Assembly: GCA_000388065.2 (NCBI GenBank)
Contig: KB932204.1
Origin: Fonticula alba ATCC 38817
Taxonomy: Eukaryota; Protista; Nucleariida
Direction: 5' to 3' (one strand)
DNA length: 39,171 nucleotides
Shown: piece by piece, positions 1,029 to 32,200 of the stretch
How the letters are laid out: every line of letters begins with the position of its first letter
How positions within the stretch are numbered: position 1 is the stretch's first letter
The notes under the pieces: model-generated
What the model saw: the letters and a program-made list of their open reading frames with translations, nothing else
Database searches by the model: none
Told to the model about the DNA's origin: nothing
Made by a program: the position numbers and the translations under genes

Positions 1029-4000
1029 TCAGCGCAGGCGACTGTCACGGCTTTGAGCAAGGGCGGCGGTCACCGACGCGGGAACACTTTCCGGGACCTG
1101 GCCAAAGAAGTGCTGCCCATTCAGGGCCGCCAGGAGGAAAGCCCGCCGCGCGCGAAGCCCCTCGCCGGTCGTATGTACCCGGCGTGGGCGGTCGACCGCC
1201 GGCGGTGCGGCGGCCGGCTCGGCGCAGATGGCCGTCGCCGAGGTGGTCTCCACGGTGGCCGCGAGTGCGGCACTCACGCGCCACTGGATGTCGGCCGGTC
1301 CCGCCGGCCCGGTGGCCGCCTGGGTCAGGGTCTCCTGGGCGGAGATGATGAAATTGAAGATGTGTGCCGCCACATCGGGGCTGTGACTGGCGCCCGCGGC
1401 CCCGGCCCCAGCGGCCCCGACCGGCAGGGTCTTGCCCTCGGCCGTGTGCGCGCGCAGGGTCACCGGCAAGGGGCCGAACTTCGGCAAGCGGCCGTACAGC
1501 TGCTCAGCCGGGGGCTGGGTCGAGTCAAAGGCGCCCAGGGGCCAGATGTCGGTAATGCGCAGTGGTGCGGCCGGGGCGGCGATGCCGGCACCGGGTCCCG
1601 CCAGCTCGAAGGCCCCAGCCTCCGATCCGCCGGCCGACCGACACAGCCAGTATCCCTGAAGGCGGAAGTCCAGGGCCAGGTCGCGCAGTGGCTGCATCTG
1701 CGCCGCCGGATGGGCATTGCGCAGTCGCAGCAGGTCGCAAGTGTCGAACAGCAAACGGCACGCCTCGGCTCGTACATATTGCGCCGAATAGGTGGTGCTG
1801 GTGTCATCGGAGCCGGGCCCGGAGGGGGCCGAAGTGCTGGCCATGGTGGACGGGCTGGGGGTCGGCAGGACGAGCGTATGCCGTGACATGTACGATACCA
1901 CGGTGGCCAGAGCCTGGGAGGTGGGCAGCCAGGAGACGATGCCTCGCGCGCGGAAGGGATCCGTCATGCTCAGCAGGTCCACATCCACCGACCGGTGGAG
2001 GTCCCCCACGGCCACGGATCCGGTGAGCAGGTAGGGCAAGGCCGCGGCCAGGTGCTCGCGTGCCGGGACCGGCAACGTGGGCAGATGCTTCAGCAGCACC
2101 AAAACCTTCTCCATGGCCGACAGGTGGACCTCGCTCAGGTCCTCGGTGCAGGTGAGGAAACGCAAGTGACAGGCCAGGAAGCGCAGGGCCTCGCGCGGGG
2201 CCAATGTCAGGCAGGCATTGTGGCCCGTCGGGCCACGAGCCGAGGAGGGGGCAACGGCGGCCGAGGTGGCCGCCAGGGGTTCCGAATTCAGGGCCGTCAG
2301 GAGCGTGGCACAACGCTGGGCATGGAACTTGATCAACTGCAGGACCGTTGGTGAGCGGGCCATGCTCAGGAAGGCCAGCGAGTCGAAGGCATGTCGCAGG
2401 AGACCCCGGCGCATGGGGGCCGACTGGACACCGGCACTGCTGCAGGCCCAGGCGGCCAGGTCGTACAGCTGCTTGGCCAGAGACTCCACGGCCCCGGCTC
2501 CAAGCCCGGCATATGGCGACAGGCCAATGGCCCCCGGCGCGCGGAAGGCCTCCGGCACCAGAGCCAGGGCCAGGGAGGTGGCCCGTAGGGACAGCCCCAC
2601 AAAAGCATCGCACAGGCTGGGAGCGGCGCCGTCAGACCGGGCCGAGGCCAAGGTGGCCCCGAGCAGGGCCCCCACCTCCCGCCGGCAATGCAGGCTCAGC
2701 AGCGGGGCCAGCCACCAGGCCACCACGCCGCCGGCCACGGCCGGGCATCGACTGGCCAGGGACACGGACTCCAGCAGGTCAGTTTGGCAGCCATCACTGC
2801 AACGGGCCCGGCCCAGGAAGCTGGCCGCGTCCAACAGCAAGGCCAGGCTGCCCTCGAGGATGGATTGCTGCACCCCGCGGTGGGCATGGCGCAGGCCGCG
2901 GTCCAATACGGCGGCCAGCTCGCGGAAGATGCCAGCTGTCTTGGTAAGCTGGCTGCCCGGCTGGTCCAGGCTCAGGTCGGTCCGGCGCAGGGCTGCCAGC
3001 AGGATGCGCAGCAGCCAGCCAAGGGCCTCCGCATCATCCAGGCTGACCAGCAACCGGGCCGGGCCGGGGGAGGCGCCGGATCCGAAGGCCGCCGAGGCCG
3101 CGGCCGCCGGGGCCCCAGACACCGACACATTTCGGTCGACATACTCCCCCCCAGGCGGGGGCGACGGGCCGAAGAGGCTCACGGCGGCCGATGACCCCGG
3201 GGCGGCGCCCGCCCCCCCGGGGGGATGGGCCTCCAGGCGCTGGAGCTCCTGCAGGGAAGACACGATGCCCGGCGTGAAAAGCATGCTGGAGAACGGGGTC
3301 GGCAGGGTCATGCCGGCCTGGCGCAAAATGCCAAGGCTGGCATTGAGGGCCCACTCGGCCAACGGGGCCGTGGCATCATCATAGAGGCCAGTGGTGGCGG
3401 CCATGTCCGAACCGGGCCCGGTGGGGATGATGTCCATCCGGGCGTAGCGCCGACCACACAGCGGCAGCCCCGGGGTCCCGGCTGGGCCAGGGTCGAAGAG
3501 CAGCTCCGCCAGCCGGCCGGTACATTGGAGGGTTGTTCGCCGGAGGAGGTCCTGGTCGAAGGCCCGCCGACCTGCCGCATACCGGAGGAGATGCTCCAGG
3601 GTGGGCTCATCACCGGCGAGGGTGGACTCCTCGGGGGCCCCTCCGCCGGGGGGGACCTTGTGGCTGGGGGGGAATTCCCCACCAGCACCGTGCATGGTGG
3701 CAGCGCCACCGGCCAGGAAGGACCCGCCAGCGGAGCTGTACATCGAGCTGGCCGAGGAGAGGAGGCCACTGGCTGTGTCGGCCGCGTTGGAAGTGGAGCC
3801 GGCGGCGGCGGCCGCCGCGGCCGAGGCCGCTGCCACCAGGGCCGCCTGCTGGTGCAGAGCATGCGGAGGTGTGGTGGCTGCCAGCACCGGGGCCGCCAGG
3901 ACATCGCAGAAGTGGCGCAGGGCTCGGTCGAGAGCCGGCTGATAGATCCGCCAGCCGGGGGCCAAGCCGGCATCGGCCCAATCGATCGAAGCGCCACCGG

Positions 4001-7000
4001 CAAGGCGCAGGGGGCCGGGCAGGCCGACCGTCGCGCGATGGTGTGTCCCGAGGACGCTGGCCACCGCGTGCAGCAACAGCCGCCGGGCGGTCCAGCGGTC
4101 ATCAACCAGGCGCCGGTTCCACCGGTCGAAGCCGAGGGCGTCCAGCTGGAAGAAAAGATCCCCATCATCGGCGTCGGCCAGCGGCGGGCTGCAGGCGGCC
4201 AGTAGCCGAAGGGCCGCGTCCACGGGGATCGGCCCGGCCGGCACCGCCAGCCAGAGGAGCGCATCCACCTCGGGGCAGGGGGCCTCCGAGGCCAGAAGTG
4301 TGGCAAGTTGGCCCTGGGCTCGGACCAGGCAAAGGTCAACCTGGGAGGCGCTGGTGCCGGGGGCGTTGCTGGTGGTGGAGGCGCCATGGGCGCCAGGCGA
4401 AGTGCCCGTCGCTCGGGAAGCGCCACCGGCAGGAGGAGTGCCGGCAGCCGGGACGCTGTCGCTAGATGCCACCCCCGGTGGAGATACACCTGTCACATCA
4501 TCAGCGCGCCGACGCTCGACCATGTCCATCCAGTAGGAGGCCGAGGCGCCGGCCGAGGAGCGCCGCGGCGCGTCCAGCGACTCGGACAGCCGCCCCAGGA
4601 CCGGGGATTCGAGCGGACCGACATCGGAGGCATCATCGGCCGCCAGGTCGCCGGTGTCCGAGGGGGCCCCCACGGCCGGACGCATGCCAAGGAGCAGTTG
4701 CCGCGCGCCAGTCGACCCATCAGGTGACATGGCCAGATCCAGGTCCGACCCGACGGCGAGAGGCACGGTGCCCAGGTCATCGGAATCGGAGAAACAGACC
4801 GCCGGCTGTGAATCCCCGGGGGCCAGCTGCAACGCCTCCAGCCCGGTGGCCAAGTCACCGAGATCACGGTCGCCTTGGGACACCCTCGGCGGGGCGGACG
4901 CCGGGGTGGTGGGCCCGGAGATCGGACTGCGCGGAGGCGAATCCAATACCAGCAGGCCGGCTGGCGCATCGGCGAGGGCCGATCCCCGGCGACCGGTATC
5001 CGCCCCACCCGGCACCGACCTGCCGGTGGCCAGTGCCGACAGACGCCCGGGCAGTGGGCCGGCCGTGCCGGCCAGGGCAAAGACCGCGGACAGGGCTCGC
5101 AGGCGCGCCAGCCCCCGGAAGGAAGGGTTATCCACAGGGACACGAGCCCCTCGAGGGAGGAAGGGCAGCCCCGCGGCCGGATCCTGATGGTCCGAGCCCC
5201 CGGGGCCGGCTTCATCGCCGCCGACCATGGCCGACGGCTCGTCATACATGGCGGCCGGGCCCAGCTCCGAGGCGGTTTGCGCGATGTTGGCCGGGTGCCA
5301 GGCGCGAATGTAGTCCGACCCGGTGGCAGAGCCGGGCATGTCGTCCATGGCCAGTCCAAACTGAGGGACATGGCCCAGCCCGAGGATCAGGGCCACGAGG
5401 GCCGGGCTGGCCCAGCGTGCACACCCGGCCAACAGGCGCCGGGAGAGGGGGTGCGCCCCGGCCAGGGGCGAGCTTGTCGCCTGGCCGAGACCGGCCACGC
5501 CGGCATCCGCACCATATGCCACATAGCAGGCGGCTGCCAGGCCGCCGAGCCAGGCCCGGTCCCGGTGCAGGGGGGCCAGGGCATTGGCAAAGCGCCTCCC
5601 CAGCAGGTCCCCCACAGGGGGGAGCTCCAGGGCCGGCAGATGGGTGGCCAATTCCGGGCACAAGCGCCGGCCAGCCTGGCTGAAGGCTCGCATGGAAGTG
5701 TCCAGGTAGAAGCTGTTGCCCAGATGCCCGGCGTCCAGGTCGCCAGCCGAGTGGTCCGCACAGGCGGTTGCCACAAGCAGACTGCCCAGGAGCAGTGATT
5801 GCCCGGCGGAGGCCAGGTCAACCGGCCCGGAAGCCGGTCCCAAGGAGAAGGTTGCACAGAAGCGCAGGCAGCTGGCCCGCTCGTGGGCCGTCCACCAGCC
5901 AGGGAACAGGTGCAGCATGGCCCCGAGCAGGCTGATCACCCGGTCGATGAGGCGACCAAGCACCGGGTCTCGCAGGACATCATGCAACTGCGCGGCCAGC
6001 TGGCCGGCCGGGGCCGCTGCCGCCAAGCTTGTGGCGCCCTCATTGAACAGGGCCACCGCCTCGAGGAGACGCTGCAGGGCCGCCCGTAGCCAGAGGGGAA
6101 TGCTGGCGCCGGGGCCGTCGACATCCGGGAGCACATTGCGCGCGGGGTGCAGGGCGTCACGGCTGCCCTGGAGCAGGGCCACATGCAACAGAGTCAAGTC
6201 CAGGGCCGCATCCGCCTGGGGAGTGCTGCCAAGCAGCCGCCGGACCATGGTACTGGCGCGGCCACCGAGACACAGCCCACAGGCGGGGTCCGGGTCGGAC
6301 AGCTGGCAGGCGGCCGAAGTGCCCAAGCTGGCCGCCATGCAGGGGCGCGCACTCAGCAGGCTCGCGGCCTGGGGCGAGCTGGCCGCCTGGGCCGCAGTGC
6401 CCGGCGAGGGCTTGGGCCCGGGCAGCCGAGCCGCCAGCCGGGCGTCCATATCAGCACAAAGAGCCGAACGCTCGCCAGGCAGACGGCCACCAAGCGTCTG
6501 CCGAAGGTGAAGAGCCGCCTCGAGCAGGGGGACAACCGGCCCGGGCTCCGGGCAAGCCGAGTCGGAGGCTCGCGCCTGATAGTGGGCCTTGAGGGTGCGG
6601 TGGAATGGGCCGAAGCTGGTGGCTAGCAGGGTGGCCAAGCCGGCCGCCGGGTCAGGAGGGGCACCCTCCCCGGGCAGCATGGCATCCATCACGGCGACAA
6701 GGTCCACCGATGGCAGGAAGCTCAGTGCCAGCAGCTGGTCAAGACGCGCATCGGCAGTGACCATCCCGGCGCCAGGGCGAAGCCGCAGGAGCAAGGTCAC
6801 AGCCTCGCAAGTAGCTGGGCAGGGGGCCTGCTCGGGGGCCGTGGCCCAGGCGGTCGACAGGGCCGCCAGCAGGGGCGCCTCCTCGCCAATGTGGTCACGC
6901 GTCAAAAGGGCCGCCACATCCGAGTAAGAGGCGGTGCTCGGCAAGTTCAGGGGACCGCCCTCGAGCAGGAGTCGGGACCGTGCCTCGCGCAGCCAGGCAC

Positions 7001-7327
7001 GCAGCATCAGGAGCCAGTGTGTCCCGGGACGCTTGCCAGCCTCGGCTGCCAGAATGCGCATGGCCTGGCCCAGGGGGATGCCAGCATGTGCTGCCAATCT
7101 GGCCCAGTGTACAAGTGGCGAGCCGGTGGCCGGACCGGCTCTGGCCAAGATGGCGCGACAGGCTTGCTTGGCAGCCGCGTGGTCCATCGACGAGGACAGG
7201 CCGCCGGGATTCGGGTGTTTGGCGGCCAATCGCCGCAGAACGCCGACATCCACACCGGCCTGCGCGGCCATCAGCAACCACCAGGCAAATGAGGGGCGGC
7301 CATGTGCATCGGCCGAGCCGGGAGCAT

Positions 7328-7359
<32 letters not shown>

Positions 7360-10300
7360 GCCGGGCCCTGGGCACTGGCAAGGTCCAGCCGATGCCCGGC
7401 GTCCACGGCCTCGGCCAGAAGCTCGGAAAGCACATGCGCGGAATCCTGGGCCCCAGTGCGCACGGCCGAGCGCCAGGCATCCGCCAGCGGGGCCGGGGCC
7501 GTCCGGCCGAAGCACAACCGGCCCAGGCGCAGCATGGTGTCACGCCAGGCGGCGCGCTCGGACGCGGCCGACATCATGCCAACCGACCCGTCGGAGGGGG
7601 GTCTAATTGCACGGAGGAACCACTGGCTCGCCTCAACCAGGGAGAAGCTGGGCTCCAGCTGGCCGGAGGGGTCGAGCTGCCTGGCGGCCGTGCTGGCTTG
7701 GCGGATTTCCTCCAACCGCGGCCGGGCGGGCAGCGGCAAGTCCGCCAAATACAACAGGGCCCCAGCCCCGATGGAGCATGTGCAGAGGGACAACATCTGC
7801 CGGCAGACCTCGCGCAGGCGAACCAGCGAGCCAAAGGGAAAGACCGCATCCTGGGGAACGGTCGTGTCGGCGGCCCCGCCGACCGGCCGAGCCCACCCCC
7901 CGGGCCAGGTGTCCGGACTGCTTGACAGCAGCAGCAGATATAGCGAGTAAACCGGCAGCAGGGTGGCAAACAGGGCAGCGCACCAGGCCCCGGAGCCCGC
8001 GTCGCCGGCGGTGGCACGGCAGGTGTCCCCCGGGCAGAGAGCGCCAGCCAGGCCACCTGGCGCCAGGCCGGTCTTCCAATCCCCGGTGGCCGGGCGAAGT
8101 GGCTGCAATGCCAGCTCCAGGGCTTGAATGATGGACTCCGGTCGGAGATTCCCCACGGAACAGTACCGGCCCAGAGCAAGCAGCGTACAGGTTAGCTCGG
8201 CCAGGCAGGCGGCCAGGCCGGCCGCCGCGTCAGCCGGGCTCCAATGAAGACCGGTCACCCGGTCGCCGGACAGCAGGACCGGGCCGCGCCAGCCGGTCAG
8301 CCAGCCGGCCGCTGACACGAGGCCCAACTTGTGGAGCTCCACCAGCAGGGCGTCGGCGAAGGCCGGATTGATGATGTCCACCCGGGCGCGCAGGGCCTGG
8401 CGCACGAGCAGCAGCGACACACGCCGAGGCGTGGCCAGCTCCGGGCCCCGGCGGAAGGATCCCAATTGGGGGAAGATGTGCATGAACTGCACGATGACCT
8501 TTTCGAAGGACCCGATGTCCACACCCCCGGCATAGGGGACCAAATCCATGCGATCATCCGGGTCCAAAGCCAAATGCCGAATGGCAGAGGCGCCGGCCTG
8601 GGCTTCGGCCGCTTGCAAAACCCCTTGCAGGGCAGCCGCGGCCCCGCCGCTGGGGAGAGCCGAATCGAAGATGCCCTCGAAGTAAAGCGGCTGACCGGCA
8701 GCGGTCATGGCCATGAAGGCCGACCTGGCCGAGGGGGGAAGATACATGGCGGCGGTACGCCGGCCGAGGGCCAACTCCGGCGTGGCCCCATCGGCCGGGC
8801 TGCCGGAGGCGGACCCGCGCGAGCCGGGTCCCGGGCTGCTGGCCATGGCCAAGAGCACGGAAATGACAGACCCGCAGGCGGCCGGGGCAATGCGTGCGAG
8901 ACTCTGCGCATCGGACAGCAGTGACCGCGAGTAGAGGGAAATATCTTCGGCCGGGCTGCCAGGCGCCGTGGGGGCCGGGCGCTGAGTCGAGTCGGCGCGC
9001 CTGTCGCCAGCTGCCGCCGACCGGTGGTGCTGGCGACGGCGGTGCTCCTGCTCTCGCAGGCGTTCCTGCTCGCACAGGAGCTCCGGAATCAGGCACGACA
9101 GACAGCCGGCCACCGTGGTCACCAAGTGCAGGAAGGGATCGCGCGCGTCTTCCAGGCCGGCCGTCCGTCCGGCGGCAGGGATGAACTTCGCATACCAGGT
9201 GCGATAGGCCGCGGCGATGGACTGCGACAGGCGTCGGTGGGTTTCCAGCGACGAGGCTGCCGCCCGTGGGGGAATGGAGCCGCCGCTGGCGCCGGCGGGT
9301 CCACTGCCAGCAGACCCACCGCTGCCCGAGGCCGTCGGCAATGGCGGCAGGGACCCCGGTCCGCCGGCCAGCGGGACGGCCAACAGCGGGGGCGACTGGA
9401 TGGGCATCTGCTCGGAATCCGCGAACGACAGCCGGAGAGACGCCTCGGCCGCTGGAATCCCGGCCGAAAAGGACACCGGCACCTCAGGCCAAGACCCGGA
9501 CGAGGTGTTGCCGATGGCGATCGACCCGGCAGCCTGGCCATAGCCATGATACGCCGCCAGGGAGGAGATGGCACCGGGAACCGTCAGCCCGCCAGGGGGA
9601 ACCGGGGCCCCCGGTAGCCCGGTGGCATTCACCGGGGCCAGGGTCGGGAGCGACACACCACCAAGCCCGGTGCCCACCGCACCGCCATGAGCCTGATACG
9701 AGTGTACCAATAACAGGGAGGAGGTGGGGCCGGCCCCGGGATGCATGGCTCCCGGGCCCATGGCATAGGTCACCTGGCTGGAGGCCGGGACCGAGGAGCC
9801 AGTGGTACCGATGCCACCGGCCGCCGAAGCCCCGGCGGCGTTGGCCCCCGATCCGGTGGCAGGGCCCCCGGTCGAGCCATTGCCCCCTGGCTGGATGACC
9901 GAAGTGGACAGCGGCTCGCGGATGACATCCGCCGCCGCACGCAGCAGGTGCACGCAGTACCGGAAGAAGGGCCAAAGCCACGTCCGTGAGGGAAGATCCC
10001 GAAGAGCCGAACTCCCAACCCGGCGCAAGCCCCCAGCCGAGAGAGCCAGCAGCAGGCGCATCAGGGCCACATGGTCTTCCAGGCTGAGAGTGACGGCCAG
10101 AACCGGGCCGTCGGACATGACGCCGTCGGCCGATCGGAGGGACGACCCGAAAGCTGACACGGCCAAATCCGCCTGCAGCGACCCGGCAAGCAGGCTGAGG
10201 CAGAAGTGCGCCAGGGTGCGGGTGGCCGTCGGGTCGGCGCCAGGAGGTGGACACGCCAGGAAGGAGGCCGACTGGCCCGGGGCGATGTCGGCGAAGATGG

Positions 10301-13300
10301 CCGGCAGGGCACGAAGGAAGGCCGGATGGAAAGCCAGCGGCGGGTCGGCGTCGGCGTCGGCCGCGGCGCCGGCCGCCCCAAGGCCAGATGCCACGCCGGA
10401 GGACAACAGCGGGAGGCCCTCGGCCGTGTTTTGCCCAAAGCTGGCCAGGCTCGGGTCATCGTGCAGAGCTGCCAGCGCGCGGAGGAGGGCCCGATCGCCG
10501 GTGGCCAAAATCGGCGACTCATCGGCCAATGGTGACAGGTGCACCGCAAGCGGCGTCACCCCGGGGGAAATCGGCTGCCCGGCGAGAGGACCACTGGCAC
10601 GAAGGCATCGGCCATGACGTGCCATCGAAGCCAGGGTCCCCCGCCAGAGGGAGTGCCCCAGGCCAGGAGGGAGGTGCGGCGACCGACCGGCAGCCGGGGG
10701 GGTGGGCTCATCGGGAGCCCCCGGGCCGGCTGGCACCGCGGTGGCCAGGCTCAGCAACAGATCCACCAGGCGGAGGAAGAGCCCGGCTGACTCGCGCGGG
10801 CCGTCTTCCACTCGGCGATCTTGCACCTGGGCCAGCAGTCCGGCCACCAAAGCCCCGGCGCGGTGCTGGTACTGACGAAGAAGGGTCTCCTGCAGGGGGG
10901 CATGGCCATCCAGCTGGGCAGTCTGGCCGGCTGACACATGGACAAAGATGCCAACCTGGAGGATGGCGCGATGGCGAGGGGTGGCCCCACGCGCGCGCGG
11001 GGCTCGCAAGTGCAACCGGAGCAGAGCCGTCAGAGCGCGTTCATTCAGCTGCTCCACTTCTGACAGGTGGTCCGGAAGGAGGACTCCAAGAAGGCTGGCC
11101 GGTGCGAGGGGGTCAGTGGAATGAAGAAAGGGCAGGGGTGGTTTTGGGGGGGGGGGGCGGGTGGCATTATTGCCATAACCGGTGCCAAGCAGTTGACCGG
11201 CTGTACGCACCCCCAGTCCATGCGGCTGAGAAGGTCGACCGCCTCGCTGATCACAAGCCAGTAGGTGCCCTGATCGGAGGAGGCATCCAACACCCAAATG
11301 GCCGAGGCGAGCAAATGGAGCAGCAGGCTCAGGAGCACCCGATGAATGGTGTCCGGCGGGGAAGAAACGGTCGAGGTAGGCCCGAGGACGGCCAGAGTCC
11401 GGAGAATGGCACGCGTGGCCCGGCCACAGGCAGCCAACACCAAGCGCTGACAGACCGGGTCCGCCAAGGATTCGGCCAAGTTCCCGGCGCCGATTGGGCC
11501 GGGGTCGAGCCACGCCGGCAGTGTCCCGGCCCCAGAGAAGCCGGCATTGGCAAGACCGCGTGCGGCCGTCGATAGGAAGACTCCGACCGGCTCGATCCAG
11601 GCCGGGAGAGCGGCAATGCCGGTGCTCCCGGCGGCGGTGTACCGCTCGGACAGGACGGCCAACTGGCCGGTCAGGGCGGCGCCGTACACCGTGCACAGGC
11701 GCCCCACCAGCAGGGGATCACCGACTCCCAGCATCGGCCGAAGGAGTGCCAGGGGAGGGGCTCCGTCCGGGGCTCCGCCCAGGGTGTCTGTGGGCCACCG
11801 TGCCGCGAGGGTCGCCAGGCATTGGAGAGCTCGCACACGAGCCGGCACCGGGAGTCGAGGGAACCGAACCACCGGACGATCGACACCCACGGAGATGAAG
11901 GTCCCTGGTGCATCGGCCCCGGCCAATTGTGCCAAGCGTCGAGCCAGGAGCCCCGGGCCGAGGGGAGCCCCCTGCCAGGCGGTCAGAGCCGTGCGGGCTG
12001 GCGCTCCGGCGGGATCCAGCACCGCCAGCAGGGACAAGATTGTGAGCAGGAGATCCAGAGCCGCGGAGGCCAGGCGCAAATCCATCAACAGGCCTTGCGC
12101 CAGGCGCAAGAGGGCCGCCAGGCGTCGTGGCCATTGGCATTCGGTCGGATCGGCACCGGCCTGGACGCCGACCAGGCGGAGCCAAGTGAGGATTTGCCCA
12201 TCATCCGAAGGGGGAGAAGCCCCGAGGGCCAGAGCATCGGCCGAGGCACCACACTCGAGGGCGGCCACGATTGAAGCCGCTCCGATGTCGACAACGGCGC
12301 GCACCGCGCGCAAGTGCGAGCTAATCACGGCCACGCTGGCACTGGAGGCGGTGGAAGCCGCCGAGTCGGCGGGGCTATCTGGCGGACTGCTCGGGCTGGC
12401 GGCCAGCAGGTCCAAGCAGCCAATAGTCAGGCGATCGGCTGATCCATCATCCGGATGGAGAGCCCGAGTCACATACTCGGGCAGGGGATCCTTCTCGGCA
12501 GCCGGGGAGTCAGGCAACAGCACGCCAAGGATATGCCCATCCAGCATTGGCAGGCAGGACTCCAGGAGGATGTCAACCAGGCGCCCGGTAGAGCAAGCGA
12601 CCGGGGACCATCCGCCGCAGGTCGGCATCTGGGGGTGATCTTCCGGCAGGAAGGATGCCGCCAAGGCAAAGGCCGCCAACGAATCGACGGCCGTGCGCAA
12701 GACCGCCGGATTGGCTGACGACAGGAAAAGCGACTGGGTGAGGGCACTCAGGAGTGGCATGCAGGAGACCGGTTGCGCGCTGGCCGCGAGCTGGGTGGCA
12801 ACCTCCTCCTCGGGCTCGGAGCCGGCGCTGGCTGCCGGGCGAAGGGCAAAGCGCGTAGGGCAGGGGATCATCGAGAAGTAGCCACGGAAGAAGGCAAAGA
12901 TGCTTGGTCCGGCCGAGCCGAGGGTCTCCTGAGGAGAGTGGGAGAGCAACCGGGGCAGGGAGCGGGGAGGGGGGGGGGGTGATCAGATGATGGGATGACA
13001 GACAAGGGGAGGAGATGCTCCATTGCAGGGGGGGGGAATGGAGTGCTGAATCCCGGGAGATGAAGAACGAGGAGAAGGAGGAGGAGGGGAAGGAGAAGGA
13101 GAAGAGGGAGCGCACTTGGAGAGCTGTGTCCGAGGTGAGGGAGAAGAAGCGAATCAGCTGCGGGGTAATCATGGAGGCCGTTCGGAAGGTAAGGCTGGGC
13201 GGAGGGCGTGGACGATTCGGCGCCGGGGGGCGAGGATTGATGGGGGAGTGCTCCAGCAGGAAGTTTGACGCGTCGGAGAGGCTGGTAATCGGCATCGGGT

Positions 13301-14271
13301 CGATGGTCCAAAGGATGGAGGACAGCAGGCTGAGGATGGCACGGGCCATGCGAGAGGGGGAAGTCCGCTGGCGTGCGTGTGTGGGATTTCATGTAAGAGG
13401 GGGGCCGGAGGAGACCCCAAATGCCAAGGAGGCCGGCGTGCCGAGCATGCAGGGCCAATCTCAGGCCAATGGAAACGCACGCGGAATTCCTTGATCAGGG
13501 TGGTCAAGAAGGAAACCGTATATGTCTGGGAGAGGCGACGCCCAAGGATGGAGAGACATTGGGTGGCGGCCAGCCGGACAGAGATGTCCTCTGAGCGATG
13601 AGCACGAAGTAGGCATGACACCGCCAGGTCGAGGGATTCCATGAGTAGCGCCCGATCGGATTCCCGAGGCTTGGGGGGGTTACCGGCCGAGGTGGGGAAG
13701 CCGTCGGCCCCGGCAATCGACCCGGGTGCAGGACCAGTAGTTCCAGGACCGGAGCTTTTGAATTGGTGCGAAGAGAAGGGCAAAAAGTGTAGCCAGAGAA
13801 TGGAGGGACAGATGCAAAAGGCCAGGAAGATTAGCGAAGAGGGCGGGAAGGCGGGCGAAATGGACACATCCGAGGGAAGATCCCCGATCGGAAGACGCAC
13901 TCGAGGTAGTCCGTCAGGAGGATGACCACGCCACGGCAGAGTTGAATGAGCATCATCGAGTTGGAGGGCCGGGAACCGGCATCAGCGTTCGACCCAGCGC
14001 CCGGGGTGCCATTCAGGTCGGTGGTGGTGGCCACTGCGGCCAGGAAGGCCGTCGAATGGCTGGTATCGCCGGCGGCCCGGCGCGAGGCGAAATAACCAAC
14101 CACCTCCAGGAGGTTCTGCTCCAAATGGGCCTGCTCCGCAATGCCGGACGATGTCAGGGCAAAGTGGAGCTGGCGCATTTTCGATGCCAACGAGGCAAAT
14201 GGGGCCGAGTGGTCATCGGCCGGGCGCGTCAGAGAGCCAGACCGCCCGGGATTTGTGCGAGGAGCCGCCAT
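1029..14271 (-). CDS. HTT: Huntingtin-like giant HEAT-repeat protein, ~4,226 aa; exons 14271-13901, 13754-13481, 13367-13116, 12928-11211, 11094-1029
   Basis: Four GTGCG...AG introns join the ORF segments in consistent phase (12,681 nt, divisible by 3). Several segments match recalled human HTT in the correct order. LLMESLDLAVSCLLRAHRSEDISVRLAATQCLSILGRRLSQTYTVSFLTTLIKEFR resembles [67 protein letters not shown] resembles QETLAAAVPKIMASF, SSANPAVLRTAVDSL resembles SSSPTIRRTAAGSA, and the C-terminal LSAMEKVLVLLKHLPTLPVPAREHLAAALPYLL resembles [33 protein letters not shown]. Further small introns inside the 10-kb last exon cannot be excluded. Confidence 0.82.
7328..7357 (+). repeat. (CAG)10 microsatellite on + strand, read as GCT (poly-Ala) in the HTT-like CDS
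   Basis: Ten perfect CAG units counted; the - strand frame translates GPAAAAAAAAAADAPG. Confidence 0.97.
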
Positions 14272-14530
14272 CTCGGAAGGGAGTGCACCCGGATCGGCGG
14301 CGAACTGGCTCGCGTGCTGGCGTGAAGGGTACGAAGGGGGGCAGAGAGGGGGGCAATGGAGGGAGGAGAAGCAAGAGGGAGGGAGAGAGGGGGGGGGGGG
14401 TCGAGGGAGGGCCGGAGAAGGGACTGAGAGAGGGCGACGAGAGAAGGAGGAAAGGTGCAGGGGCTTGAATCCGACACCCCACCCGTGGAGCGCCCCGAGG
14501 AAACCGGGCCCCCTTGAAGACCTGCCCCCC

Positions 14531-14790
14531 NNNNNNNNNNNNNNNNNNNNNNNNNNNNNNNNNNNNNNNNNNNNNNNNNNNNNNNNNNNNNNNNNNNNNN
14601 NNNNNNNNNNNNNNNNNNNNNNNNNNNNNNNNNNNNNNNNNNNNNNNNNNNNNNNNNNNNNNNNNNNNNNNNNNNNNNNNNNNNNNNNNNNNNNNNNNNN
14701 NNNNNNNNNNNNNNNNNNNNNNNNNNNNNNNNNNNNNNNNNNNNNNNNNNNNNNNNNNNNNNNNNNNNNNNNNNNNNNNNNNNNNNNNNN
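14531..14790. other. Assembly gap (N run) flanked by poly-C on both sides
   Basis: N run seen directly, just upstream of the HTT-like start codon. Confidence 0.99.
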
Positions 14791-15805: not shown

Positions 15806-17806
15806 TCAATGCAGGGGGTTGAACATGACCGAGCGGATGACGGCCTCGAGCTCCTCCTCGCCAGCGGCGCAGGCCTCGATGACCTTCTGGTTGGTGGCAT
15901 GGCCACCCTCGACCAGATGCCGGACGACGGCCATGGCGATGCGGACACTGAGGTTCTGAATGTCACGCAGCGGGGGGAAGAGGCTGCCGCGCTCCAGGCG
16001 AGCGGTGTCCTTGACACTGATGTCGGCCAGGACCTCGGCAGCGAGGAGGAAGACCGAATCCGGAACGTGGTTGGCCTCGCAGGTGATGATGCCGAGAGCC
16101 ACACCGGGGAAGATGTAGGAGTTGTTGCACTGGCCGGGCAGGCGAATGTCGCCAGGGGCCACCTCCACCGGGAGGAAGGGGCTGCCCGAGGCGAAGATGG
16201 CGCGGTTCTGCGACCAGGCGTACGCCTGGGAGGCGGTGCACTCGGAGTTGGCGGTCGGGTTGCTGAGGGAGAAGATGATCGGGCGCTCATGAGCGGCAGA
16301 CACACTGCGAATGATGTTCTCGGTGAAGACACCACCGGTGCCGGACACGCCAATCAGAACCGAAGGCTTGATGGTGTCCACAATCTCCTGGAGGTTGTCC
16401 ATGAAGGGGATGTCCTGGGCCAGGGCGGCCTTGTTGGGGGCCATGGTCTCGTTGGCCAGGCGGCTGCGAGACACCAGACCACTGGAGTCCACGAGGAAGA
16501 TGCGACGGCGGGCATCATCGGCAGTCATGCCGGCATGGACCATGGACTCGACCAGGAGCTCGGCAATGCCGGTGGCCGCAGTGCCAGCACCCACGAAGAG
16601 GAAGGTCTGCTCGCCGAGGGACCGGGGCCCGGTGAACTGAGAGGCGGAGGCCGCACCGGCGCCCATCTGCGAGGCGATCAACAGACCGGCCACGGCAATG
16701 GAGGCAGTGCCCTGGATGTCGTCATTGAAGCAGGTGATCTGGCTCTGGTACTTGTCCAGCAGGCGGAAGGCATTGGCATTGCCGAAGTCCTCGAACTGGA
16801 CGAGCACACGCGGACCCCACCGGCGGCGAGCGGCCTGGATGAAACGGTCAACCAGCTGCTCGTAGGCATCGCCGGTGACACGGTGCTTCTTGAGGCCGAT
16901 GTAGAAGGGATCGGCCAGGAGCCGGGAGTTGTTGGTACCGGCGTCGAGGGTGACCGGGAGGAGGAACTTCGGGGGGATCCCGGCGCAAGCCGAGTAGAGG
17001 CTGCTCTTGCCGACGGGAATGCCCATGCCATTGGCACCGAGATCGCCAAGGCCGAGAATGCGCTCGCCATCGGTGACGACAATGGCGCGGACATCATCCT
17101 CCGGCCAGTTGTCGACCATGGCGTCGATGCGGTCCAGCTGGTCGACATTCAGGTAGAGACCCTGCGGGCGCATGAACATCGAAGACCAGTTCATGCAGGC
17201 ACTGCCGACGGTCGGGGTGTAAACCACAGGCAGGAGGGCCTCCAGGTCGTCAGTGAGGACGGCATAGAAGAGGCGCTCATCGACGGAGGCCAGGTTCATG
17301 AGGAACTCATAGCGCTCCAGGTCGCTGCCCTTGGAGGCGAGCTGCGCATGGACACGGCGAAGCTGGAGCTCGCGCGACTCCTCGGCCGCCGGGAGGAGGC
17401 CCTCGATGGAGAACTCGGCGCGCTGCTGCTGCGAGAAGGCAGTCCCCTTGTTGAGCCGAGGGTCGGCAAGGACGGAGGCGCCCTTCATGGAGGTGGAAAT
17501 AAAGCGCGGCATGTCGGAGTGCTGGGGCTGGGCCTGGAGATTGGGAGCGGCAGTGGAAATGGAACGCTATGGAGCGGGGGGGGGGAGAGGGAGAGAGCGC
17601 CACCGAGAGAGAGAGGAGAGAGAGGGGGGGGGGAAAGAGGGAGGTCGATGGAGGAGGGAGGGTAAGTTGACCACGGACGATGAAGAGGGGGAGGGAAGAG
17701 GAGGAATGCGGGTGGATACCAGCAGAAAGAAAAGGAGGATGGGGACCCCAGCCAGGAGGAGGATGGATGGAGTCGACCGGACGACCACCAGTCGAGAGAG
17801 GGACAT
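15806..17806 (-). CDS. ME: Malic enzyme (NAD(P)-dependent malate dehydrogenase, decarboxylating), ~615 aa; exons 17806-17720 and 17566-15806
   Basis: Family motifs DPRLNKGTAF, LLPVVYTPTVG, VVTDGERILGLGDLGANGMGIPVGK, VQFEDF, FNDDIQGTA, FVGAGTAATGIA, IFSLSNPT, GQCNNSYIFPG. The catalytic exon is certain. The upstream 29-codon exon (ATG 17806, phase-0 intron 17719-17567, GTATCC...CATAG) is inferred with lower confidence. Confidence 0.96.
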
Positions 17807-20065: not shown

Positions 20066-22095
20066 CCACGCGCTCCGCTGGGGATACAGAACGCATGAGT
20101 CGCCCCCCGCTGGGCATGCTTACGCGATGCACTTCGTTTGGGCACCATTTCCAAGGGAGAAAAATGGGGAAGGGCGGAGGGACCACACCAGTCTCAAGGC
20201 AGTGCGCTACCCCCAACCGCGACTGGTGGAATAATTCGAGGGAGCCTAGCCCAAAATGGAGGGAGACCAGCGGCACTCGAGATCCGGGTGCTGTCGGAAA
20301 GGAATTGGACACATACTCCTGAAGGGGGAAAGGGCGGGGGGGGGGGGGGGCGGGGCACTGAACAAAAGCGACGAGACGCCGCCCGAGAGATGGACATCGG
20401 TGGCGGCACATGGCCAGAGGGATGTGCGAGCCAGTATACCCAGCGGAAGCATCGGCCCTCTTTCGGAAAGGGGAGAGGGGGCCGCACAGCCGCAGCGAGG
20501 CGCAGGAGAAGAGGAGGAAGAGTAGGAGAAGGACCAAGAGAGGAAGAGGGGGAGGGAGAGGGAGGGAGGAAGACGCACCTACTCCGGGCGGAGAGTTGCA
20601 TCGAGTGGAGATCCGGACGGTCGGGACAACGAGCAGGTCAGAGGGCATGTGGGCATCGATGTTGACGTAAGAAGGGAGGAGAGGGAAACGCGCGGAGGGA
20701 GGGATCGAGCGTCGAGGCGAGGTGAATGGCGAGAGTGGCCAGTCCCAGAGGCAGGCCGGCAAACAAGCGGCCAGGCAGGCCGGCAAGTGGCGAGAGGGAC
20801 CGACAAGCGGAAGAGCATATGGCAAGACAGGAGGCAGGGGAGGCTCTTGTGACACGCGGCCGCAGGTCGCAGATTGCACACACCAGTGCAATACACGAGA
20901 CAGGCAAGCCGTACCGAAAGAGAGGAGGCAAAATGCAAGGGAGAGAGAGGCTCAGGAGGGGAGAGATGACGAGGTGGCAGGGGCGAGGGGGCCGCTCGGG
21001 CGCTTTTATAGGGGTGAATATCCGCTCGGCCCGTGCCCGCTCGAGGCGAGGAGGCTGATTCCCTCCTCGCCCCGCCCCCCTCAGAATGCAAGGATCCCCG
21101 AAGGATCCCCCTTTTCCAGGGCCCACACTGTCGCCACGCCCCCGAAGACCTACCGAGGGGCGAATATCAGCTCAGGCCCCGGGGGAGGGGAAAGTCCCTC
21201 CAAGAGCAAGCTGCGTCATGGTGAGCAGAGGGCAGCAGGGCGAAGGGAGATCGGGCTCCCCGTGAAAAAAAAAAAAAGAAAAAAAAAAGGACGCCTACTC
21301 CTTGCCCCGCCCCCAAGACGATCGGCCATCCACCTCGGCTCGCCGGGATAACGGCCAGCACGCCCAGATCTTTGGGGGTGGCCGGGTGCCCGTGTCGCTG
21401 TGCACATCAGGCCACAACTGGAAGGGTCGTCTGGTGGGGCGATCGACCACCGGGACCGGGGGGCGCGGCCTTGGGCGCTCCGAGAAGCGGGAGTTCGTCG
21501 CCTGCACCGTCGTTGTCGGGGGGGAGGGGGGGGGGGGGCGAGGGGTCGAACCGAACAGGGGAAACGAGGGGCAAGGTGAAGTCCGATGAAAAGTAAATAT
21601 TGTCGTCGAGAATACGGCAGAGCTTTCGGTCCTTCGGGTAAATTACCCGCGCCAACGGGAGGTGGGGTTACAGGGGACGAGGGGAGCCGGGCGCGGGGAG
21701 AAGGAAGCCCGTGGCTTGGCGGCGGCGGACGAAGTGCGAGGGCACCGCAAGTGATGCCGGAAGACGGTCCGCCCCAGGGCTATCACAAGGCCGGTCAAGT
21801 AGCCGATCGGAGCGTGGCCGTCGGCCGCCGTGGGGGCCACCCTGGGGATGGGCAGGGGGGAGGGGCGATACTTCAGGACCCCCGCCGCCTTGACCTCCGG
21901 AAAAGACCAAAGCCACTCGGTCTTCGTCGGAGGTGAAGACGATCCCCACCCCGCCAAGATGACCCAGAAACGGCCCCGCCATTGGGAGTTGAGTCTTGTG
22001 ATTTGTGGGCGTGTGATGCATCGTCACCCGGGCTTCGGCACCCTTCTGGATATCAAGATCGCCAACTCATCTTCGGGCCTCGGGGCGTGTGGGCC

Positions 22096-22177
22096 GGGCC
22101 GGGCCCAAGCACGGGGAGCGGCCAGCCCCGGNNNNNNNNNNGGGCCGGGCCCAAGCACGGGGAGCGGCCAGCCCCGG
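22096..22177. other. 36-nt direct duplication around a 10-N gap; probable unmerged contig overlap
   Basis: GGGCCGGGCCCAAGCACGGGGAGCGGCCAGCCCCGG occurs at 22096-22131 and 22142-22177, on either side of N10. Confidence 0.85.
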
Positions 22178-22413
22178 TCGTCGACAGATGGCGGGGGGGG
22201 GGGACCACATCGGGCTCATTTTCAGCCCCCAGCCCTGGTCTTCCCCGGGGCCCGGCGCCCGGGCCATGAACTCCTCCTCCCCTCTTCCCCACCTCGACCC
22301 CACGCCGACACTCCGTGCCCTCTCCCCCGCCTCTTTCTTCTTCAACTTGCCTCCTTCGCTCTCTTGCACGAAGTTTTGGACCCCCTCTTCGCTCTTTCCC
22401 CTCTTCCGCCGCC

Positions 22414-23141
22414 ATGGACCAGCTCAACAACCCCATCATCACGCAGATGATCCAAAATGCCACGGAGACTTGCGTCTTCAAGTTCGGCATGAGTGGCGTG
22501 ATGGGTGCGCTCGCACTGCCCTCTCTCTGACCAATCTCCGTGCCTTCCTGCTGTCTTACCCTTCCCTCTATCGAATCTCGCCCTCCCCCCCTCCCCCCCC
22601 CCACCCCCCCACCCCTGCCCCCCCCCCCCGCCTTCCTGGCGCGTTCGGTCTGTTCATGTCCTCCACATCCCCGGTCCCAGTGGGCGTGGCTGGCGAGCCG
22701 CTCAAGTTCCGTGAGATTGCCCGCGACATGTACCGGACCTCGTCCAGCTACGCTCGCAACTTCGCCTACGTGGGCGCCATCTATGCTGGCACCGAGTGTC
22801 TAATTGCCTCATACCGTGCTGAGCATGATGTTGGGAACTCCGTTGCGGCTGGCTGCTTCACTGGCGCGTTCCTGGCGCGCAACGGTACATATCCATCATG
22901 CCGACCCGCCTGCGCGACCGCCCGCCCGCCCGCCCGTCATGTTCGCACATTTGATCATTGCCTCTCTGGGGATGATGTCCTCCAGCCATCGGCATAATCA
23001 TGACAAAGCACTGACACTTCCTTCTTCCCTCCTGCCTCAGCCGGTCCCCAGGCTATGGCTTTGGGGTGTGCAGGCTTCGCGGCCTTCTCGGCGGCCATCG
23101 ACCATGTCCTGGAGAACTACAGCTCCCCCAAGGATGAGTGA
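22414..23141 (+). CDS. TIM22: Mitochondrial inner-membrane import translocase subunit Tim22 (Tim17/22/23 family); exons 22414-22504, ~22630-22884, 23041-23141
   Basis: ETCVFKFGMSGVMG...GAFGLFMSS...[70 protein letters not shown] is the Tim22 signature, including the two conserved Cys. Intron 2 (22885-23040, GTACAT...CTCAG) is in phase. The 5' boundary of exon 2 is uncertain (see findings). Confidence 0.93.
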
Positions 23142-25313: not shown

Positions 25314-26231
25314 NNNNNNNNNNNNNNNNNNNNNNNNNNNNNNNNNNNNNNNNNNNNNNNNNNNNNNNNNNNNNNNNNNNNNNNNNNNNNNNNNNNNNNN
25401 NNNNNNNNNNNNNNNNNNNNNNNNNNNNNNNNNNNNNNNNNNNNNNNNNNNNNNNNNNNNNNNNNNNNNNNNNNNNNNNNNNNNNNNNNNNNNNNNNNNN
25501 NNNNNNNNNNNNNNNNNNNNNNNNNNNNNNNNNNNNNNNNNNNNNNNNNNNNNNNNNNNNNNNNNNNNNNNNNNNNNNNNNNNNNNNNNNNNNNNNNNNN
25601 NNNNNNNNNNNNNNNNNNNNNNNNNNNNNNNNNNNNNNNNNNNNNNNNNNNNNNNNNNNNNNNNNNNNNNNNNNNNNNNNNNNNNNNNNNNNNNNNNNNN
25701 NNNNNNNNNNNNNNNNNNNNNNNNNNNNNNNNNNNNNNNNNNNNNNNNNNNNNNNNNNNNNNNNNNNNNNNNNNNNNNNNNNNNNNNNNNNNNNNNNNNN
25801 NNNNNNNNNNNNNNNNNNNNNNNNNNNNNNNNNNNNNNNNNNNNNNNNNNNNNNNNNNNNNNNNNNNNNNNNNNNNNNNNNNNNNNNNNNNNNNNNNNNN
25901 NNNNNNNNNNNNNNNNNNNNNNNNNNNNNNNNNNNNNNNNNNNNNNNNNNNNNNNNNNNNNNNNNNNNNNNNNNNNNNNNNNNNNNNNNNNNNNNNNNNN
26001 NNNNNNNNNNNNNNNNNNNNNNNNNNNNNNNNNNNNNNNNNNNNNNNNNNNNNNNNNNNNNNNNNNNNNNNNNNNNNNNNNNNNNNNNNNNNNNNNNNNN
26101 NNNNNNNNNNNNNNNNNNNNNNNNNNNNNNNNNNNNNNNNNNNNNNNNNNNNNNNNNNNNNNNNNNNNNNNNNNNNNNNNNNNNNNNNNNNNNNNNNNNN
26201 NNNNNNNNNNNNNNNNNNNNNNNNNNNNNNN
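25314..26231. other. Assembly gap (~918 N) likely hiding the 3' exons of PEX5
   Basis: N run seen directly; the PEX5 TPR exon ends at a donor site (26317) whose intron runs into the gap. Confidence 0.97.
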
Positions 26232-29240: not shown

Positions 29241-32200
29241 TCAGTGACCGGAGTGGGGAACGCCGGTGGCATGCTGCTGCCCCGGGACCAGAGCCCCCAG
29301 GGAGTGGAGGAGATTCAAAGCGGCGGGGGTCGGTCGAACTGCGGGGGCCCGGGCGCCGGCACCACCATCGGGAATCGGAGCCATGCCCACGGGAGGAACG
29401 GGTGCCGGAGGGCCGCTGCTGGGCACTGGTGTCGAGCCAATGGCTGGTAGCCGTGGCAAGGACAGATACCCGACCAACGGGGCCGAGAGAGGGGCGCCCG
29501 CTGGGGTGCTTGTGGCGGTCGCGGATGTGACAGTCGCCACCGACGCCGCCGACGCCGACGACGCCGACGCCGACGCCGCCGAGGGCGGAACCCCTCGACG
29601 AGCAACCGCCGTGGTGGATTGCCACCACGAGGGAAGCTGAGGCTCGGCGCTTCCAGCCCCCGAGTCCGAGGCAGATGCCATGCTGGTGGCCGCGGAGGAA
29701 CGCGACCGCGACCCCATCGCGGCCTCGGCTACACCGGCACCACTGCCGCCAGATGGGATGCCCGTGGCGGGAGCAACATGCCCGAGAGTGGCCATGTTGA
29801 AGTGCGCAAACTCCGTCACCAGGTCCAATTCCTGCTGAACAGCATAGCAGTAACTGACGATCGTGCTGGCGGTCTCGAGCCAGGCCGGGGCAAGATCCTC
29901 ATCACAGGCGACAAAGCAATCGGCCCCGGCCGAGGTCGACCTGTCAGCGGCTGAGGAGCACACTTGGCCGGGAGGAGGGCCCTCCTCCTGCGGCCGGAAG
30001 GCCCGGGCAAGGGACACACGCGCCGGGTCTGCGGGGCCCCGAGTGGCCATTGTCGAGGCCGAACTGGCAGCCAGGCGAGAGAAGGGGGCCCAGTCTTCCA
30101 GCAGGGGTAGAACCACCACCAAGGCCAGGGTCACAAGGCGTGCCGAGGCCAATGACGAGGCCAGGGCCAGACGCAGGGCATGGCCCGGATCATCTGGCGG
30201 CCCGTGGATCAGTAGGGCTCGAAGACAGCGCTGGCAATTGGACCGGCGAACACATGCGGTCCGCCGGTCCTGCGGGAACACCGGCAGAGGAGTATCGCCG
30301 GTGCCCTCCGACACACCGAGGCGCAGGTGGAACAGGAATTCCGGCGTAAGCAGTTGGTATGAGTGAAGACGGAAGGCGATGAAACGCGCGGCGCAGAGGG
30401 GCCTCCCGGACAGGGTTAGCGCCATGGCCCAGAGACGATCTACCGCTCGGCGAAGATCAGATGGCAGAGCACGCTCGATGGCCAGCGAGCCGATGGGCAG
30501 GAGTCCGGATTGTTCGGAAGCCCCGGCCAACAATGCGGCCGCAGAGGCCGGCTGAGTGGCCAACGGGGGCGGCCCATTCGGTGGACACAGGGGAATCGTG
30601 CGCAAGAGGGGAAAGTGCTCCGGGTGCACAGCGCACAAGCCAGCCGGCGGGGGGGGGAGTGTCGTGCCGATGCCCTCATGCATGTGGAAGAAGCCCAACA
30701 GCTCCGCATCGATCTCGGTGTCAATGAGACGCAACGATCCGAGCGCGCGGATGGGATCCCCGGCAATCACCGACGCCGAAGCCATGATGGCCAGGGAGTG
30801 GAAGTCCGCCAATCGCCGGCGGTAATGCGATCGCATCCGACGATGGTGATGCAGTGCCAGAGCCAGGGTCGACTCGTCGAGACTTGATCCCGGAGGGGCT
30901 GGCCCGCTGGGGGTGGGTGCCCCGGGGAAGGGGGCCGTCGCTCCCGAAGCTCCACCGGGGGTATGGCCAGTGGTGGAGGTGGCCGTGGGGATGCCGGCGC
31001 CGGCGGCACCGGCGCCGGTCCCTTGTGTGCGCGGGAAAGGCGGCAGAGGCGAGGCAGCGGCCCGTTGCTCGGAGGCGATGAGCAGGGACCGGGCATTGAC
31101 AGCACACTGATAGGCATATTGGGCCTGCCCAATGAAGTCGGGCTGAGGATCGGAAGGCCGATGGCCGGCTGTCGGCTCGACGCCAGAACCACCATCAATG
31201 ACCATTGGGAAGGCAAAGAATCCCGGAACCGGTGGCATTGCCGCGAGGGTGGTCGCCTCACGCCGGGCCCGAGTGATAAGGCTGTTGCGAAGGGCCTTCT
31301 CGGCACAGCGCAGCCACCCGGTGGCGGAAAGGGCCCGGTCCCAAGAGATCGCCTCCTCGAGGCTGTCATCTAGTGGCAGGATCGGAGCTGTCAGGCCGGG
31401 GATTCCCCAGGCGGCCGGGGAGGGAAGCCGACGCTCCGACATGCCGACCGGGCGATTCATCAAGCCCACGGTTCCCAAAGACCGGACCACATCGTGAAGG
31501 TCACCGGCCGGGTCAGTCCATTCCTGGGCAATGCGTCGAGTAGGGGGAGCGGCACTCGCCGAGGGGGGAGGGGTGGGATCGGTTGAATCGGTCGATTCGG
31601 CCGATTCAGTTGAATTGGGCGAGTCTCGGGTGCGACCAGCGACATCGGCCGGGGAAGCTGACGTGGACGAGGCGCTCGAGGGGACGGGCTCCGAAGGAAC
31701 GGGGGCCGATCGCGAGGCAGGCGGGCTGCCGGGAGCCGCGCGGGCCAGCTGCCGAGATGCTTGGTACTGGCGGAGGACCTGCCGAGCGTAGGAGTACCAA
31801 AATTCGGACTCACGGCCCTGGCCGCGTGCGGCGGCGACCGCACCAAAGGCCGACAGCACACGCGACTGGTCGAGAAGACCCGCCGGGCCGGTGCCAGAGC
31901 TGGCCAATGAAGAGATGGACACCGGGGTGCCTGGGGCCGGAAGGCCAACCAGGGCCCCCGCCTGGCGGAGGAGCTTGTCGAGAGTGTGATCCGCCCGGAG
32001 GAGGGATTGGACACTGTGGAGCCCAAGGCGCTCCAGGCGCGGGGGCGGGGAGACCCCGGGCGCCACGGCGGCGAAGCGCTTCAATTCCCGAGCCGCACCC
32101 CCGGCAATTGCCACCCGTGCCGCCCGGTCGGTCAGACCAAATTGGATGCGCAGAAGCAGGACAGTCAGGTCGGACTCGCCATCCGGCGCGGAAGAGGCGG

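Follow-up and report, generated by a model that had tools for sequence, protein, structure and literature searches.

Locus 1029-14271 on the minus strand (14271..1029) of a 39,171-nt stretch of the Fonticula alba ATCC 38817 genome (assembly GCA_000388065.2, scaffold KB932204.1; the whole stretch is called the window below) is a multi-exon gene with five exons and a product of 4,226 amino acids (aa). We consider it probable that this product, the NCBI hypothetical protein H696_03071, is a very divergent, lysine-poor and insert-filled orthologue of huntingtin (HTT). We read it in this way because HTT is the one family for which the protein shows a specific signal, found at two independent and collinear places of the N-HEAT region, with no rival family competing for it. 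A preliminary description of this DNA had raised the idea of a huntingtin-like gene in a fungal relative, and the organism is indeed one: Fonticula alba belongs to the Opisthokonta, order Rotosphaerida, in the nucleariid lineage, the sister group of fungi.

The evidence that carries this reading comes from the N-terminal part of the protein. A Pfam scan of the whole chain returned one family only, PF20926 Htt_N-HEAT_1, with 30.1 bits and an expectation value (E) of 7.4e-7, a score slightly below the family cut-off of 31.2 bits. When fragments were submitted, aa 150-262 reached 32.3 bits in one stretch, and aa 150-345 reached 40.2 bits (E 5.7e-10) in two collinear stretches, the match resuming past a proline-rich insert. 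The generic HEAT family obtained just 17-20 bits. With the canonical HEAT helix pair excluded, aa 197-262 matched Htt_N-HEAT_1 with 12.8 bits over profile positions 28-68. Since the canonical repeat is generic HEAT, about half of the Htt_N-HEAT_1 score has to be counted as generic, and about 21 bits are specific to HTT. The precomputed database annotation of H696_03071 already carries PF20926, marked as 'faint'. Homology of the N-HEAT region of H696_03071 to that of HTT is supported.

A further resemblance lies farther along the chain. We built a 20-column signature (YWLV[RK]x[EK]...D[FY]xL) from four metazoan HTT rows of the supplement of Seefelder et al. 2020 (PMC7725122), in whose 28-taxon metazoan HTT alignment the word YWLV is found 24 times. 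The best site for this signature in H696_03071 is at aa 855 (YWLVISEAVDLLSRMDWGLL), where 12 of the 20 columns agree, a level reached by 4 of 2000 shuffles (P = 0.002, a value that wants perhaps a 20-fold correction as the block was picked post hoc). By chance, the word YWLV itself would occur 0.004 times in the protein. As in HTT, the site stands downstream of the N-HEAT_1 match, at a distance of about 620 residues.

H696_03071 was also compared by eye with the Trichoplax, Xenopus and Takifugu HTT rows of the same supplement (PMC7725122). Similar blocks were seen in the order of HTT at aa 182-240, 281-320, 360-390, 465-480, 701-715, 855-880, 3760-3800 and 3864-3941, with some HTT lysines replaced by arginines (HTT KEIKK against KEFRR). 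The last block resembles the conserved C-terminal block of HTT, the pattern of which is AME[RK]V... LP..AR... LP..L ... ATVV; set against metazoan HTT with three gaps, it is identical in roughly 24 of 66 HTT columns, and its hand BLOSUM62 score of about 40 raw is not significant alone. We infer that what is left of N-HEAT, followed by the bridge and C-HEAT, makes up the rest of the chain, and the C-terminal two thirds as a whole would then be homologous to HTT.

Several observations weigh against orthology. Besides the shortfall of the whole-protein Pfam score, the modest score of the C-terminal block and the post hoc choice of the YWLV block, the canonical HEAT repeat (about aa 166-197) finds designed alphaRep proteins as well, with an E of about 1e-5. 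The remaining HTT Pfam families, which we take to be N-HEAT_2, bridge and C-HEAT, gave no match when about 30 overlapping fragments, 120-500 aa long, were scanned with E allowed up to 10. Solved HTT structures exist, and phmmer searches with seven fragments against the PDB (E up to 10) yielded alphaRep and chance matches and no chain named huntingtin. A HMMER search with aa 100-1000 against 1.84 billion representative proteins returned the self-match only, and so did word-index searches with the C-terminus, aa 155-300 and aa 1690-2650. The ESM Atlas neighbours of the N- and C-terminal parts were not HTT; they had few features in common with these parts and belonged to generic solenoid families, including listerin, ECM29, PSME4, MMS19 and Tra1. 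AlphaFold2 models made without an alignment were all helix in secondary structure, with a mean predicted local distance difference test score (pLDDT) of 46.2 for aa 140-1000 and 41.9 for aa 3540-4226, and are too poor for a comparison with the N-HEAT/bridge/C-HEAT architecture seen in the HTT-HAP40 cryo-EM structure. Foldseek with the aa 140-1000 model against the PDB listed importins, CAND1, Scc2 and others with template modelling (TM) scores of 0.10-0.26, which is uninformative on a model of pLDDT 46.

The preliminary description had gone further than these data. For a 'full-length' HTT, as it called the gene, the bridge and C-HEAT found no backing in the Pfam models, in phmmer against the PDB or in the structure route. 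Its succession of N-HEAT and C-HEAT motifs between inserts was confirmed for the inserts and for N-HEAT, through the 40.2-bit match and the YWLV site, while for C-HEAT it goes as far as the comparison by eye. The competing HEAT families that it had warned of (spatacsin, MROH, INTS1) matched in none of the fragments, and the matched blocks follow the order of HTT.

The composition of the protein has to be taken into account when these searches are read. H696_03071 contains 17.3% Ala, 14.3% Leu, 9.5% Gly, 9.0% Ser and 8.5% Pro, and Lys makes up 0.5% of its 4,226 residues (about 21 Lys) against 6.8% for Arg. Ala, Gly, Pro and Ser together account for about 44%, and numerous 50-residue segments exceed 55% A/G/P/S/T. 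The guanine plus cytosine content (GC) is 0.70-0.72 across 2-12 kb of the window. With so little Lys and so much Ala, Gly, Pro and Ser, failure of single-sequence searches is expected, and the GC-driven amino-acid bias probably conceals homologies in the Fonticula alba genome from BLAST-type searches. At such divergence and with such a composition, failed Pfam detection does not show that the remaining HTT regions are absent.

The same blanks can be read in another manner. H696_03071 could be a lineage-specific giant HEAT/ARM solenoid and not an HTT orthologue, with the Pfam match and the YWLV site reflecting generic HEAT similarity plus chance, or an ancient module shared at the N-terminus only. 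Such an origin would fit a protein for which the 1.84 billion representatives, the word searches and the PDB are all blank for relatives, for which Htt_N-HEAT_1 is the sole Pfam family recovered, about half of its score resting on the canonical repeat, and whose Atlas neighbours are listerin, ECM29 and the like. We nevertheless hold it to be unlikely, as the roughly 21 bits outside the generic repeat fall in two collinear stretches, no other family-specific model matches the protein, and the best site of the YWLV signature among 4,226 residues comes after the first match, as in HTT. Sequence searches gave neither an HTT best match nor a competing best match. The candidates spatacsin, INTS1, MROH, FOCAD, Tra1/PIKK, ECM29 and PSME4 were set aside, since Pfam scans of the whole chain and of fragments, with E allowed up to 10, listed no family-specific domain for any of them.

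The gene model on which the divergent orthologue depends was examined separately. The minus strand holds a single 3,555-codon open frame (1029..11696), and the exon structure was rebuilt by reading the sequence upstream of it for GTGCG[TC] donors and AG acceptors. All four introns have GTGCGT or GTGCGC donors and AG acceptors (minus-strand starts 13900, 13480, 13115 and 11210). A word search identified the product (P0001) as H696_03071; this database entry served as the spliced protein, its pieces were checked exon by exon, and the translations of the individual exons fall at consecutive positions, the NCBI model being the same as the reconstructed one. RNA contigs were placed on 10900-14400, of which they cover scattered parts. 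Those of two small 2012 runs (X1 and X2) give junction support for two of the four introns, 1 and 4, which they skip exactly, with minus-strand GT..AG ends; another RNA-derived contig spans 14142-14314, across the start of exon 1. H696_03071 is therefore expressed, and its splicing agrees with the model. The 5' end is less secure. A 260-nt assembly gap (N run 14531-14790) lies 260 nt ahead of the ATG, no stop codon interrupts the frame from one to the other, and the N-terminus of the HTT-like gene may therefore be longer than annotated. The features are listed in the table.

Table. Features of the H696_03071 gene and product (positions in the window; blocks marked 'by eye' come from the manual comparison with metazoan HTT)
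Feature	Position	Strand	Residues	Details
Exon 1	13901..14271	-	aa 1-123 plus 2 nt	start codon 14271; N-terminus MAAPRTNPGRSG
Intron 1	13755..13900	-		146 nt, GTGCGT..AG; X1 contig links 13754 with 13901 (CT..AC on + strand)
Exon 2	13481..13754	-	aa 124-215	canonical HEAT repeat and start of Htt_N-HEAT_1 match
Intron 2	13368-13480	-		sequence reading
Exon 3	13116..13367	-	aa 216-299	sequence reading; translation present in the protein
Intron 3	12929-13115	-		sequence reading
Exon 4	11211..12928	-	aa 300-871 plus 2 nt	X1, X2 and X3 contigs map here
Intron 4	11095..11210	-		116 nt, GTGCGT..AG; X2 contig joins 11094 to 11211
Exon 5	1029..11094	-	aa 872-4226 and stop	single 10-kb open frame; helical blocks between Ala/Gly/Pro/Ser-rich inserts
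Best stretch of PF20926 match	13296..13612	-	aa 172-239	covers positions 1-68 of the 152 in the profile; crosses intron 2
HTT 'YWLV' signature	11088..11263	-	aa 855-874	split by intron 4; 12/20 columns
Block			aa 182-240	VR..A..CL ... L.KE.RR..SR.ARA.L; by eye, 14 identities/59 ungapped columns, hand BLOSUM62 about 50
Block			aa 281-320	P.L.R ... QETL..A.P.I.A.F; by eye
Block			aa 360-390	SS..PA..RTA; HTT counterpart KSSSPAIRRTAA; by eye
Block			aa 701-708	GDP...G; HTT counterpart HGDPQVRG; by eye
Block			about aa 3760-3800	RGL.R and L[IV]K....R; by eye
C-terminal block	1887..2120	-	aa 3864-3941	AMEKV.VL / LP..AR / LP..L / ATVV; by eye

An inflated or fused model, in which in-frame inserts of the 10-kb exon are missed introns or an HTT-like N-terminal gene is joined to a downstream gene, would make the extra ~1,000 aa partly an annotation artefact. 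The RNA contigs leave room for it, as they were placed on 10900-14400 and cover scattered parts of that interval, and at a GC of about 70% open frames are common on both strands. A stop-free frame of 3,354 codons is, however, far beyond chance at 70% GC, where we calculate about 0.019 stops per codon, the frame is unchanged throughout exon 5, and the NCBI model is identical to the reconstructed one. We regard this possibility as very improbable; it is in any case compatible with an HTT orthologue and does not exclude one.

Elsewhere in the window, a NAD(P) malic enzyme gene is found at 15806-17512 on the minus strand (Malic_M 5e-82, malic 3e-71) and a gene for a Tim17/Tim22/Tim23-family protein at 22089-22997 on the plus strand (1e-19). 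A 1,822-codon open frame at 29241-34709 on the minus strand has no Pfam match at E 0.001 and possibly encodes another large orphan protein. Between 24001 and 26231, beside a 918-nt assembly gap (25314-26231), GC goes down to 0.40, against 0.62-0.72 in the surroundings.

If H696_03071 is HTT, the Fonticula gene would be a member of the family in a lineage reported to be free of it, and would contradict the statement of Seefelder et al. 2020 (PMC7725122), who surveyed HTT and HAP40 over the eukaryotes and searched nr with PSI-BLAST and HHpred, that HTT is 'not in fungi and nucleariids'. That the fungal line had lost HTT was a conclusion drawn earlier from the occurrence of the protein in Amoebozoa and Holozoa (PMC7725122). 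The secondary loss in fungi put forward in the preliminary description is consistent with our reading but is for this reason not new, and with an ancestral HTT in Amorphea also deduced before, the gain is incremental. The new part is narrower and concerns the timing: the common ancestor of Holomycota would still have had HTT, and the loss would fall on the fungal side only, on the fungal stem, after Rotosphaerida branched off. In the literature library that was searched, no paper pairs huntingtin with Fonticula or with H696_03071, and huntingtin was absent from the papers listed for Holomycota terms. An HTT of this kind would also mean that the protein can drift past the reach of BLAST and PSI-BLAST in GC-rich genomes, so that other reported absences may be false, and it would offer HTT research a non-animal comparison point free of polyglutamine (polyQ).

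As to its role, the locus would encode a purely alpha-helical HEAT-repeat solenoid of 4,226 residues without an enzymatic domain. Its first HEAT repeats match the HTT-specific N-HEAT_1 profile, and the YWLV signature is kept farther along N-HEAT in the correct order; the remaining HTT regions would be blurred by the GC-driven composition and by low-complexity inserts that add up to about 1,000 residues. By analogy with HTT and from what is known of the family, the product may act as a large scaffold organising vesicle or trafficking complexes and cytoskeleton-linked ones, probably stabilised by a HAP40-like partner; HTT and HAP40 are reported to occur strictly together. It is conceivable, though somewhat doubtful, that Fonticula alba keeps a complete HTT-HAP40 system and is the only known fungal-side opisthokont with huntingtin. 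In that case, its aggregative multicellular fruiting body would make ancestral HTT function testable on both sides of the animal-fungus split, together with the link that HTT has in Dictyostelium to development by aggregation.

Compared with known systems, H696_03071 shares the helical-repeat fold of generic HEAT/ARM solenoids (importin-beta, CAND1, Scc2/NIPBL, FANCD2/I, designed alphaRep), whereas none of their family-specific Pfam models matches it. With metazoan HTT (human NP_002102, Trichoplax XP_002114774) it has in common the N-HEAT_1 profile match, above cut-off on the domain, the YWLV signature in the N-HEAT region, the organisation as a giant all-helical solenoid without any other domain, and the blocks collinear by eye up to the C-terminus. 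It differs from human HTT in being about 1,080 aa longer than the quoted ~3,140 aa, as the preliminary description had estimated (about 1,000 aa), and from animal HTT in having no N17/polyQ/polyproline (polyP) head: the N-terminus is as that description quoted it (MAAPRTNPGRSG), and the longest Q and P runs of the protein are 2 and 3. It also differs from metazoan HTT in its 0.5% Lys and strong Ala/Gly/Pro/Ser bias, in escaping the other HTT Pfam models and phmmer, and in its gene having just four introns, all near the 5' end. Outside animals, Seefelder et al. 2020 (PMC7725122) reported HTT orthologues from Dictyostelium discoideum (XP_645159.1), Capsaspora, Sphaeroforma and Naegleria: like the Fonticula gene they come from unicellular or aggregative protists, and PSI-BLAST or HHpred, not plain BLAST, was needed to find them.

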